Part shown: piece by piece, positions 19,831 to 25,348 of the stretch
Numbering within the stretch: position 1 is the first letter of the stretch
Layout of the letters: every line of letters starts with the position of its first letter
The notes under the pieces: model-generated
Told to the model about the DNA's origin: nothing
What the model saw: only the letters and a program-made list of their open reading frames with translations
The model's database searches: none
Source: Antechinus flavipes
Taxonomy: Eukaryota
DNA: 64,000 nt
Assembly: GCF_016432865.1 (NCBI RefSeq)
Contig: NC_067400.1
Location: 619,876,001-619,940,000, forward strand
Direction of reading: 5' to 3'
Translations under genes and position numbers: made by a program

Positions 19831-20953
19831 GGGGGGGAGTCATGGAGGAAATTGGAAAGGAAAGTATTTTCAATCAAAGATTGTGGTTGAACTTCCTCAT
19901 GCGCCAGCGTCCTACGGAGCCATAATGTAGAGGCCCAGGAAAGCTCCGCAACTTCATCCAGTCCCGGGGCTCAGAGGCTTCCTACGCGTGCGTCTCGGCC
20001 CCTGTATTCCTTCCCTGGGCCCGGTGCTCGTTACAGGCTATGTGGGCGCATGTGTGTGTGCATGTGGGCAATGTCTCCCCCTCAGACGTAAGCTTTCTCC
20101 TCCCGTCCATTCTCCACACACCCGGCAAACGAGGGGCACTTCCGGACGCTGGTTACCTGATTGCCCCGAGGCGCACAACAGCCTTAATAACCTTCTGGCA
20201 TGGAAAGCAAATCAAACCGAGTTTTTCCCAGAAGCCATTGTTGATAAGTCTAGTGACTCCCAAAATGAGAGGCCTTCCATACAAACGATCCCGGAGTCAG
20301 ACAGTAACAGCAGTTCGGAGGATGAGGATTATCATTATTAAAGAGACTTGAACAGTTAAAAATCAAGAGGATATAAAATCACCTTGAACCTTGAGAATTT
20401 TATTAAGATAAAAATTTAGGTCCAGACTGGAACAATATAACCCACCATAATTATGTATTTATACAGTCTTGTAATTCACAAAAATCACCAATATGGTAGT
20501 CTATTAAAATCCATTAAAAATATCAGGAACAAGGATCAGGAACAAAGACTGTAGCCAGAAGCTGATGGCAGCCCTAGCGATAGCCCAAGATGCCCAGCGG
20601 ATCAGTATTCAGGATCGACTCAAGCTTGTTTGGCTTCCACATCCGCTATAAGGAGGATGCAGCAGAGTCTGGCAGCAGCGAAGAGGGAAGAGACTTATTT
20701 TTCCAAGAGGCTAAAAAGCCCCAAAGAGCTGGAAGCTCAAATTCTTCTATTTCAAAGGAAGAAAACAAGGAATCCTGTTCAACTAAGTGCAATTTAGGAT
20801 GTACCTCCAAGAAGAAACTTAAACTAAAAGGAGGTGGGGACATGACAGATGAGCAAGATGAAACCCCTAAAAGGAAGAAAAATAAGTTCCCTTCACAAGA
20901 CAGTACCTCAGTGGAGGAAAAAGGAAGCAGTGGTAATTCACATCCTGACCAAT

Positions 20954-21422
20954 CATCACAAAACACAAACGATCTTTTGTCTGGAAGGAATATTTCAAGG
21001 ATGTGAAAAATGGGTGTCTCGTGTTTTTTAATACTCTACTTTCTGTTAGAGGATGTGCCACTTCATCCTTTGCAATAATTACTTCTTTCTTCAAAATCTT
21101 CATAGCATAATATTTTCCACTTGCCTTCTCTCGAACCAAATCACTTTCCCAAAAGTGCCTTTACCCAATAGTTTCAAATAGTCAAAGTCATTCATTGTCT
21201 TTCTTTTATGATGAGTTGTAGAAGCATCCATTTCCTCTTCTCCTATATTGTCAATTTGTGAAGTAGGACTACAATTCATCCTTTCCTCTTCTTGCCTCTG
21301 AAGTCTGTCTGCTGCAGCCTGGAGAGCTTCTGTCCATTCTTCCCTTTCCTCTGGAGTGTCCACATGAAATGTTCGTTCTATAACAGCGGTCCACCGGAGG
21401 CGTCTGATAATAAATGTGTTGG
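20954..21422 (-). pseudogene. AKT3: Processed AKT3 pseudogene fragment (end of PH domain, linker and start of kinase domain), frameshifted, truncated at both ends
   Basis: Intronless NTFIIR...[50 protein letters not shown], then a 1-nt deletion near 21138-21140, then [28 protein letters not shown]...RLCFVM. The linker sequence is AKT3-specific. No poly(A). Confidence 0.95.
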
Positions 21423-21454
21423 CCCCCGAGTAGAACGGGACGGGGCGCTGCGGA

Positions 21455-21502
21455 GCGGACGGAGCAATCTGCCCCGGGGCGGACGGAGCAATCTGCCCCG
21501 GG
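21455..21502. repeat. Perfect 24-bp tandem duplication in a CpG-rich segment upstream of C19orf84 exon
   Basis: gcggacggagcaatctgccccggg at 21455-21478 and 21479-21502. Confidence 0.95.
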
Positions 21503-21593
21503 CCGCACCCTTGCCCCGGTTTGGCTCCCGGCCCTAACCTGCTCGCGGAGGGATTCCCATCTAGCCCCTTCTTCAGGGTCCCTGTTTCCCAAG

Positions 21594-23593
21594 ATGGAGC
21601 GGCCGGAGCGGGCGGAGGCCGGAGGGTGAGCAGGGCCGAGAAATGCAAAGATTTGGAGACCTAGAGAGGGTCTAAGAGGAGGGTCGGAGGGCCCGGACAC
21701 CGACGGACAGAGACAGACCTGTAGGGGGAAGGGGCGCGCTGGGGAGGGGGGGGAGAGGGGCTGAGACCTGGGTGGGGATCCCGGGCCGGACTTCGGCCCT
21801 GCTCCACCCTCAGCTCCCTCAGGGACCTGACTCAATCGGCAACTTAATGGCAACTTACTGTGTGTCGGGCACCGAGTCAGGTGCTGGGGGTGCGATAAAC
21901 GAGACAGCCCGAAGGACTAGAAGTTGGTCAGTTCCTTCTCTCTGGAGTTCAGTTTGCCCATTTATAGAACGGGGCCGGAGCAGGGGGACCAGAAGGATGC
22001 ATGTGCAATTCGATGTTGTCTAAGGACTCCCTGAGCTCCGACATCCCCTGTTCTAGGTCCTCTCCCAGCTCTGACCTTCCCTGTTCTAGGTCCCTTCCAG
22101 CTCGGACATCCCCTGTTCTAGGTCCTCTCCCAGCTCTGACCTTCCCTGTTCTAGGTCCCTTCCAGCTCTGACATTCCTTGTTCTAGGTCCCCTTACAGCT
22201 CTAAACCTCTCTTGTTCTAGGTTCCCTCCCAGCTGACATCGCCTGTTCTAGGTCTTCTTCCAACTCTGATCTTCCCTATTCTAAGGGTCCTTCCAGCTTT
22301 GACATCCCCTGTTCTAGGTCCTCTTCCACTTCTGACATTTCCTGTTCTAAGGGCTTTCCAAGCTAAGACGTTCCCTCTTCCAGATCTTCTCCCAGCTCTG
22401 CCATTCCCTGTTCTAGGTTCCCTTCCAGCTCTGACATCCCCTGCTTTAGGTCCTTTCCCAGCTCTGACATTCCTTATTCTAGGTTCTCTCCCAGCTCTGC
22501 CATTCCCTGTTCTAGGTTCCCTTCCAGCTCTGACATCCCCTGCTTTAGGTCCTTTCCCAGCTCTGACATTCCTTGTTCTAGGTTCTCTCCCAGCTCTGCC
22601 ATTCCCTGTTCTAGGTTCCCTTCCAGCTCTGACATTCCTTGTTCTAAGGGCCTTCCAAGCTAAGACATTCCCTCTTCCAGATCCTGACATTCCTTGTTCT
22701 AGGAATCTAATCTAGAAATAGAAGATTCAGGCAAGGATGGGGACGTGGGTGCAGCTAGGGAAGAAGGGGCTTTCTCCTCTCTGACCCCTGGCCCCGTCTC
22801 ATTGCAGAAGCAGCCTCTCGGAGCCCCCGAAGCCGCCGGCCGCCAGCCCTGCTCCCCAGACGCTGGCCCTGAGTCAGGTGGGGCCGGGCCAGTGATGGCC
22901 CCCGGATCCCTGCTGCCCCAGCTCCTCCCCGAGGGTCTGGCCGCCCTCACCATCCCCATCCGCCTGGATGCCCTCTCCTACCTGCTCCACAGTGCCCTGC
23001 TTGGGGCCTACAGCCTCCGGCCCGGCCCCGCCATTTGCCCTTGCCACTCCGCCCCTTACGGGGCCTGGCCGGTGGCCCAGGATGCCCCCAGACAGCACTG
23101 GCCCAGGAGCCAGAGGCAGAGGGAAGTTAATTGGTCGGAGGAGGGGGAATTCAAGGGTGGTAGAGAGCCGGAGGCCCCCAAGAGACGGGCGCGCCCCTCG
23201 CCCCTTCGGCCGGCCCTCAAGGACCAGGGGAGCGAGTCCTGGCGGCGCAGACCCCTCGCCCCTCCGCCCAAGCCCAAGGAGGAACAGGAGAGCAGGTTCC
23301 ACCATCGCCGAAGCCCGGCCGCCTCCTGCACGTCAGCCCCGGCGGAGTGGGAGAGGGATTATCAGCACTGCAGGCCTCCTGTCCCTCCTTCCCCGCCCAG
23401 GGAAGATTGGGAGGGGGGCTACCACCGCCCGAGGGCCCCAGCTGCCGCCAGCCCCCCACCGGCTGAGGACTGGGAGACCGAGTACTACGGAGCCGGGACC
23501 CCAGACCCCCGGGACGCCCCTTTGGGCCGCTCTGAGAGCCCGCTTCTGGAGGACAAGGAGAGCAGCCCCGAGGCCCGGGGCCTCCAGCCCTGA
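21594..23593 (+). CDS. C19orf84: C19orf84 ortholog (piRNA-directed DNA methylation adaptor); coding exons 21594-21625 and 22808-23593 with a frame discrepancy; conserved frame opens at ATG 22895 (232 aa)
   Basis: Contains [29 protein letters not shown] and AEDWETEY, matching human ([29 protein letters not shown]...AEDWETEY). The small exon [10 protein letters not shown] has acceptor cttcag (21576) and donor gtgagc (21626). The strong acceptor is at 22807 and AATAAA at 23926-23931. Position upstream of LIM2 is syntenic. Confidence 0.85.
22031..22705. repeat. ~30-bp minisatellite (ccagctctgacattccctgttctaggtccct) in C19orf84 intron
   Basis: About 20 or more visible degenerate copies. It explains ORFs 22217..22690 and 22299..22715. 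Confidence 0.95.
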
Positions 23594-25348
23594 GCGGCCC
23601 CCAGCGTCCCGACGCCTCGTGGCGTTGCCCGGCCCCGGCCCCTCCTCTGACCCCGGCGGGGGGTCCCCGACTCCAGAGACCGGCCTTCGTCTCCCACTTG
23701 TCCAGCAGGTCTGGGCAGCCGGTGGTACTTCTTTGACCCAAGTTTCTCAAAATTGTTGCCGAACGGGGCTCTGACCTCAGGCCTCGAGTCCCTCTTCTGG
23801 CCCAGGAAAGGACGCAGACATTTCCCTCCCTGTCAGAGCCTCCAGCCCCCACCAGGGACCCAAGCCCCCTGATCCCACAGTTCATGACCCCCGAGGGACC
23901 CAAGCGTCCCGCTCTCCGGTTCACTAATAAAGCTGTTGTGATTCGCCCTTTCTGTGTCCTGGGTGTGTGGTTGGCAGCTGAGGGCTAACCAGGTGGTTCT
24001 GAGGGCCGCGCATTAGTGGAGGGAGCGCAAAGGAAGGAGGGGAGGCCCTGAGGAGCTGGGCTGGGGGCCTTCCCTTCCCCCCAAATCAGTTGTCTCAGCA
24101 ACTCCCATTTATGGCCTTTGCCAGCTCAGCAACTCTGGGGACTAGAAGCTGCTGGTAGCCGGGCCTATTGTCCCGAGGGGTTAAGGGATTTGGGGGCACC
24201 CGGGGGAGGGCATTCAGGAAGGGCTGGGACTGGGCTGGGATTCAGTCTGCACCAGGGGGACGTGATCATCGGAGGGTTCGGCATCATCTCTGAGACTAAG
24301 GTATGGACCGAGGCCCCCGCTCCCGAACCCGGAGCCCCGTCCCAGTCCCCCAAGTGTCTGAATCCCAGCTCCCGCTCCCTCGGGGCTTCGTCTCCCCGAT
24401 CCCCACCACCATCATCTTGGGGACCCAGCAGTTCTGGGGGGGAGCGAGATAACCGGAGCTCCTCACAATACGACCCCAAGTCCCCTGTAGGTATCCACCA
24501 TTCCCCCTTGGAAGATCCAGGTGTCTGACATCTTTAGATGGACACAGAGAGACAAAGAGATGGAAACAAAAACAGAGAGACAGAAACAGGGAGATAAAAG
24601 ACACAAAGAGAGGAAAGAGAGACAGACGGGGGAGAGAAGGAAATAGCAGGTGGTTAAGGGGAGGAAGGAAAGGAAAAAAAGGAAAGGGACACAAAGAGGA
24701 AAAGACAAATAGAGATGGAGATGGGGCGGGGCAGGAAAAACCCTACGGGAACTGAGATGGAGAGAAAGAGACTTCGAGGTACCTACCTCAATGACACAAA
24801 CTAGGGGATCTAGAACCCAGCCAATTCCCCTCGGAAACCAGGCCCCCCGATTTCCCAACCTTCACCCCCGACCCTCTAGGGACCCAAGAACGCTGGTTCC
24901 CCAACTCCCACTCCCTGTCCCCAGAGATAGTTACACCCCTGGGTCCCAGCTCTCCAGGACCCAGTGTGTGATGGAACACTCAGATGGCCAGCCCAGGACC
25001 ATTTAGGACCATTGGCGAATCAGGCGTCTCCCCGTGTCTTTCATTCTCACCTCTCTAAAGGACCCAGACGACCAATGTCTCTGCTGCTAAACTGTCAGAG
25101 ACACAGAATCCATCACCAGCCTTGCCTCCCTCAATCCGGTCTACAAGGACGCCGGCATCTGGGGACATAAATCCCAGCCCGGCCCAGACCCAGATGCAGC
25201 CTCTGTCCCTCAGGTGCTCCTGGCCCCCTGTGCTTTTAAGAGCCAGGGCCCTTAGGTCCCCAGGCCAGGAGTCTCCCCCCCCCACTCTCTGAGGCTCCCT
25301 CATTTCCCTTCCTCCTCTTCCCCCTCCCTCCCTCTCTCCCAGGACACC

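Follow-up and report, generated by a model that had tools for sequence, protein, structure and literature searches.

The C19orf84 locus in Antechinus flavipes

We analysed a 64,000-nucleotide stretch of Antechinus flavipes DNA (the window), in which a plus-strand gene has a reading frame that breaks close to its beginning (Table 1). Judged by homology, this gene is the A. flavipes orthologue of C19orf84. The preliminary description had given it the same name, and the assignment holds: the long frame of the last exon is a 100% match to a RefSeq A. flavipes protein named as a C19orf84 homologue, and Pfam family PF17703 is found above its cut-off. The search matched 47 homologues, comprising A. 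flavipes, seven other marsupial entries and many placentals, with E-values from 1e-39 to 1e-168 for the marsupials. All 47 carry PF17703 except P0005, apparently a mis-spliced variant of the devil protein. The 232-residue product of the long open reading frame (ORF) scores 47.5 bits against a cut-off of 40, with residues 11-78 aligned to model positions 48-115. As this ORF alone passes the cut-off, the conserved core is situated entirely downstream of the break. The motif E-D-W-E-[ST]-E-Y is also present in the ORF, as AEDWETEY, and aligns with all orthologues.

In the mouse, the small protein C19ORF84 acts with SPOCD1 to join MIWI2, a piRNA-guided PIWI protein, with the de novo DNA methyltransferases (DNMT3L and DNMT3C), and LINE1 methylation is lost in knockouts (PMC7618654, PMC13757620). 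Male fertility in the mouse requires the gene as well (reviewed in PMC13757620). Binding to SPOCD1 and the DNMT3 machinery and the need for the protein in piRNA-directed methylation are known for mouse only (cited in PMC7618654 and PMC13757620).

The upstream start codon of the gene (ATG 21594-21596) has a strong context, with A at -3 and G at +4. From this ATG, exon 1 supplies 10 codons plus two bases, to position 21625 (phase 2), and is followed by a donor GT at 21626-27 that reads GTGAGC. The acceptor AG lies at 22806-07, and the acceptor sequence, whose final base is 22807, is CATTGCAG. Past 22808 the exon-1 frame runs into a TGA at 22893-95, for a total of only 39 codons. The last base of this stop is at the same time the first base of a second ATG (22895-97; G at -3 and G at +4), which opens the 232-codon ORF ending at TGA 23591-93, and stop and start thus form the overlap TGATG. 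The preliminary description had proposed the 21625/22808 splice, the 39-codon frame and the overlap of its TGA with ATG 22895, and we confirmed every one of these coordinates in the sequence. It had also placed a missing base in the run of G at 22880-83, which counts four in the reference (G4). This proposal is supported by the devil protein (see below) and by local translation with an extra G: over nine residues, the added base gives SQVGAGPVM and joins everything into a single frame of 272 codons. The G+C content of this part of the window is 62%.

In the intact allele, the codons at the overlap read CCA GTG ATG (P V M), and loss of one base four codons upstream turns them into CAG TGA. The TGATG overlap therefore arises from ordinary codons shifted by one base and needs no special explanation. 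A point absent from the preliminary description is that the frame of the long ORF is also free of stops backwards through the acceptor and through 21434-21625, which is why RefSeq could build a different model of 371 amino acids.

Table 1. Features of the C19orf84 locus, in window coordinates
Feature	Position	Strand	Basis
Added upstream exon of the RefSeq model, source of its ATG	20590..20727	+	tblastn of P0001; without homologue among the other C19orf84 proteins
Start-codon exon upstream of ATG 21594, RefSeq limits	21434..21593	+	AG at 21432-33; 5' UTR in the homology-supported model, coding in another frame in RefSeq
Coding part of the exon with the ancestral start codon	21594..21625	+	Translation; 10/11 residues identical to the devil start; start common to six other marsupial orthologues
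Intron, GT..AG	21626..22807	+	Sequence; the RefSeq 371-aa model has the same junction 21625/22808
Last exon, first part, conserved peptide in the exon-1 frame	22808..22879	+	23/27 residues identical to devil; aligns with six marsupial orthologues
G4 run, one base short	22880..22883	+	Comparison with all other antechinus contigs and the devil protein; RefSeq/devil homology begins right after
TGATG, stop of the shifted frame over the ATG of the long ORF	22893..22897	+	Internal Met codon in the intact allele
232-codon ORF with C19orf84 core and C-terminal Trp-Glu-x-x-Tyr motifs	22895..23593	+	Pfam PF17703; 86% identity to devil
24 bases absent from the window 3' UTR	23618..23619	+	Present in X1, X2 and X4 contigs
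AATAAA poly(A) signal, predicted, probably the gene end	23926..23931	+	Read from the sequence

Comparison with other marsupial proteins

Six orthologues from other marsupials, representing four orders, have the exon-1 start and the N-terminal peptide in common with the window. The proteins of devil, brushtail possum, wombat, Gracilinanus, Dromiciops and one further marsupial open with the pattern ME..E.AESGG..LSEP....P.PQT.ALSQ. Across the G run, the marsupial comparison was made at the protein level. The window tiles onto the devil protein in three pieces, namely exon 1, the last exon in the exon-1 frame (identities for both in Table 1) and the long ORF. The devil protein follows the exon-1 frame of the window until SQVG and the frame of the long ORF from AGPVM onwards. 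Where devil has SQVG-AGPVM, the window has SQVG-PGQ-stop in the exon-1 frame and GG-AGPVM in the frame of the long ORF. Because the devil protein passes from one window frame to the other between SQVG and AGPVM, exactly one base is missing from the window at the G run 22880-22883. The position equivalent to ATG 22895 is an internal Met in five of the six other marsupial proteins.

The devil (Sarcophilus harrisii) RefSeq protein, of 287 amino acids, resembles the window in its MERPERAE start, in the codon split at the exon junction and in the N-terminal peptide. Over the rest it has the identity given in Table 1, and it contains both the core and the AEDWETEY motif. The two differ in that the first 39 codons of the window are out of frame, with one G missing, and in that the devil protein has two short mid-protein insertions relative to the window.

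Other antechinus genomes at the break

Contigs from four antechinus runs (X1, X2, X4 and X7) were aligned to positions 21430-24000, a range chosen to avoid the AKT-like fragment upstream. X7 does not cover the exon, for which the data consist of four contigs from three samples (X1, X2 and X4), two organism labels and two studies. X1 and X2 are separate samples of one organism, and X4 comes from a second organism in another study; going by the sample list of PMC9290055, the first is probably A. flavipes and the second A. stuartii. Since the X1, X2 and X4 contigs run through the intron into the exon, they are genomic.

X1 and the two allelic X4 contigs have an extra G behind 22879, which makes a run of five (G5) and gives SQVGAGPVM as in devil. 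The X2 sequence, CAGATTGGGG, combines an extra A behind 22877 with a G>T change at 22878; it too is one base longer, and codes for SQIGAGPVM. The frame is continuous in all four contigs and all three samples. With the extra base and a continuous frame in every contig, the break is private to the reference sequence and absent from the other antechinus genomes checked. The preliminary description had pointed to G5 at 22880 as the sequence that would speak against a real frameshift; a run of five was indeed found, in other animals (X1 and X4).

The reference sequence also stands apart at other positions. At 23073 the window has T, coding for Val, whereas all other contigs have C, coding for Ala. 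The 24 bases that the window lacks from the 3' UTR (Table 1) are a second reference-only indel, 740 bases downstream of the G run; in X2, the copy of these bases behind 23618 has two letters unlike the other samples. Between 7 and 10 substitutions over about 1.3 kb separate the window from each of the long full-depth X1, X2 and X4 contigs, and thus no X1, X2 or X4 contig represents the assembled haplotype. Differences private to the window amount to two indels and one substitution, compared with one indel and 19 substitutions for the other haplotypes (Fisher p = 0.034).

X4 comes from an animal that is heterozygous across 22804-22914, the N-terminal coding part, which is represented by two contigs of equal depth. 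These differ at 22834, 22862 and 22884, with changes that include Pro>Leu and Ala>Val. Within antechinus, the first 40 residues of the protein vary. A 24-base unit is present in 2.2 copies at 21451-21502, shortly before the start codon; X1 has 18 additional bases behind 21493, and the copy number of the unit therefore differs between animals.

Origin of the frame break

In our assessment the break is probably a consensus error of the reference assembly. The normal marsupial form of the gene consists of two coding exons, beginning at ATG 21594, spliced at 21625/22808 and encoding about 272 residues. From a run of five G in the last exon, the reference assembly has dropped one base, leaving G4 at 22880-22883. 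This loss puts the N-terminal 39 codons out of frame and brings a stop over a codon that normally encodes an internal Met. The most likely cause is a residual PacBio CLR/wtdbg2 consensus error in a GC-rich homopolymer, missed by a single Pilon pass. Residual one-base homopolymer errors are expected from a recipe of CLR reads, wtdbg2 and a single round of polishing. The assembly was produced from 100x PacBio CLR data with canu correction and wtdbg2, followed by one Pilon pass with 50x of 100-base BGISEQ reads (PMC9290055).

The case has much in common with long-read homopolymer errors: it shortens a G run by one base within GC-rich sequence, and the assembly was made with wtdbg2 and one Pilon pass. 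Short-read contigs from other animals do not show the loss, which disrupts a gene that is otherwise conserved. It differs from such errors in the accompanying 24-base loss, which exceeds their usual size, and here the comparison is with contigs of other animals. The excess of private indels over private substitutions leans towards error. Two observations stand against error: the 24-base loss is not typical of long-read consensus error, and the T at 23073, private to the window, has the look of genuine variation, the assembled haplotype being unsampled among the contigs.

The alternative that carries some weight is that the sequenced male truly carried the one-base loss as an allele, in either the heterozygous or the homozygous state. 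We consider this unlikely, although several observations fit it. The window haplotype, with its private substitution at 23073, falls outside the sampled haplotypes, and in a comparison of dasyurids A. flavipes is reported to have the highest heterozygosity (PMC9290055). ATG 22895 has a good context and corresponds to the internal Met found in most other marsupials, with the Pfam core wholly downstream of it. Against an allele stand the absence of the loss from all four other contigs and the excess of private indels, which fits error better. The strong context of ATG 21594 would make leaky scanning poor. In addition, the gene is needed for mouse male fertility (PMC13757620), and a damaging allele should be rare. 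On balance we infer an error rather than an allele of this male.

If the allele were nevertheless real, most ribosomes would start at the strong first ATG and make the 39-residue peptide. The main ORF would then be accessible only to ribosomes that step two bases back and reinitiate at TGATG, or on transcripts without the first ATG, and any C19orf84 protein would have to start at ATG 22895. The product, if made at all, would keep the conserved core and lack only the poorly conserved first 40 residues. In effect, a wild semelparous marsupial would carry a natural N-terminal knockout or hypomorph of a factor essential for piRNA-directed methylation.

Overlaps of this kind are known to function in viruses: termination-reinitiation at UGAUG or UAAUG operates in segment 7 of influenza B and in the subgenomic RNAs of caliciviruses. 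The window likewise has TGATG, with the stop of a short ORF over the start of the main ORF, and the frameshift might be fixed in A. flavipes or in the genus, with the short upstream ORF coupled to the main one. The overlap itself, as it stands in the window, is all that speaks for such coupling, which we regard as extremely improbable. Unlike the viral cases, the overlap occurs only in the reference sequence and results trivially from the shift of CCA GTG ATG by one base. As a stable species feature it is contradicted by the other antechinus contigs, four of four being one base longer, and these three samples with two organism labels have a single open frame; the devil protein is one continuous frame as well. 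A species-wide frameshift rescued by reinitiation is thus effectively excluded.

Three origins had been offered in the preliminary description: assembly error, an allele, and a functional frameshift rescued by leaky scanning or termination-reinitiation. Error and an allele of the sequenced male remain, and the fixed, rescued frameshift is not supported, since the three other antechinus samples have the extra base. As a biological feature of the species, the arrangement of 39 codons and TGATG is most likely not real. Nothing suggests a remodelled start of C19orf84 in marsupials or antechinuses. The break has little biological import, the gene being intact in every other antechinus sample seen.

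Splice alternatives and the RefSeq gene model

A further way to account for the break is that the splice model is wrong, and that the true protein runs in the frame of the long ORF through both exons or uses another acceptor. It is suggested by the stop-free course of that frame through the acceptor and 21434-21625, and by the 288-codon frame that results when ATG 21594 is joined to an exon start at 22759. We judge it very improbable. From ATG 21594, no donor other than 21626 can be reached in open frame. Among 61 AG sites, one alone, with an exon start at 22759, yields a long ORF; the tract before it is purine-rich, and its use would leave out the conserved peptide. The tandem AGs with exon starts at 22811 or 22814 leave the phase unchanged. 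The preliminary description had allowed for a different exon or phase giving an open frame; no other splice choice gave a homologous one.

The protein in the long ORF's frame is the one that RefSeq annotates. Its 371-aa model (P0001) uses the junction 21625/22808 and reads the start-codon exon in the frame of the long ORF, taking its ATG from an added upstream exon (Table 1). In a BLASTP comparison with the devil protein (P0002), nothing is matched before residue 135, and homology runs from GAGPVM. The upstream exon contains no Pfam family. The implied intron, 20728-21433, is of the GC..AG type, and its GC donor lies in a poor context. With G5, as in other animals, the RefSeq frame would not join the main ORF at all. 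The exon-1 frame, in contrast, matches the six marsupial orthologues.

We rejected the RefSeq reading because no other C19orf84 protein matches its first 134 residues, and in our view the 371-aa model results from the missing base. The finding has value mainly for annotation, in that the first 134 residues of the 371-residue A. flavipes RefSeq protein are artefactual. For comparative work on C19orf84, the model to adopt instead is the one of about 272 residues beginning with MERPERAE. Other single-base frame breaks in the A. flavipes assembly need read support before they are interpreted.

The predicted first coding exon of the RefSeq model coincides with the first 46 codons of a 138-codon ORF (20590-21006, plus strand), in which no Pfam family was found.

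Neighbouring sequence

The C19orf84 intron contains a 33-base tandem array at 22034-22685 (TRF), with about 20 copies that are 75% alike. Summed over the four antechinus DNA runs, contig depth across this array reaches thousands to tens of thousands, and the 33-base unit is thus part of a dispersed or satellite family of high copy number.

An AKT-family kinase fragment that has no introns and at least one frame break lies on the minus strand at 20870-21426. It spans the end of the PH domain, the linker and the start of the kinase domain (about residues 71-235), and scores best on the PH domain of RAC-gamma (AKT3). These sequence features suggest a processed pseudogene, truncated at its 5' end, that lies immediately before the start exon of C19orf84.
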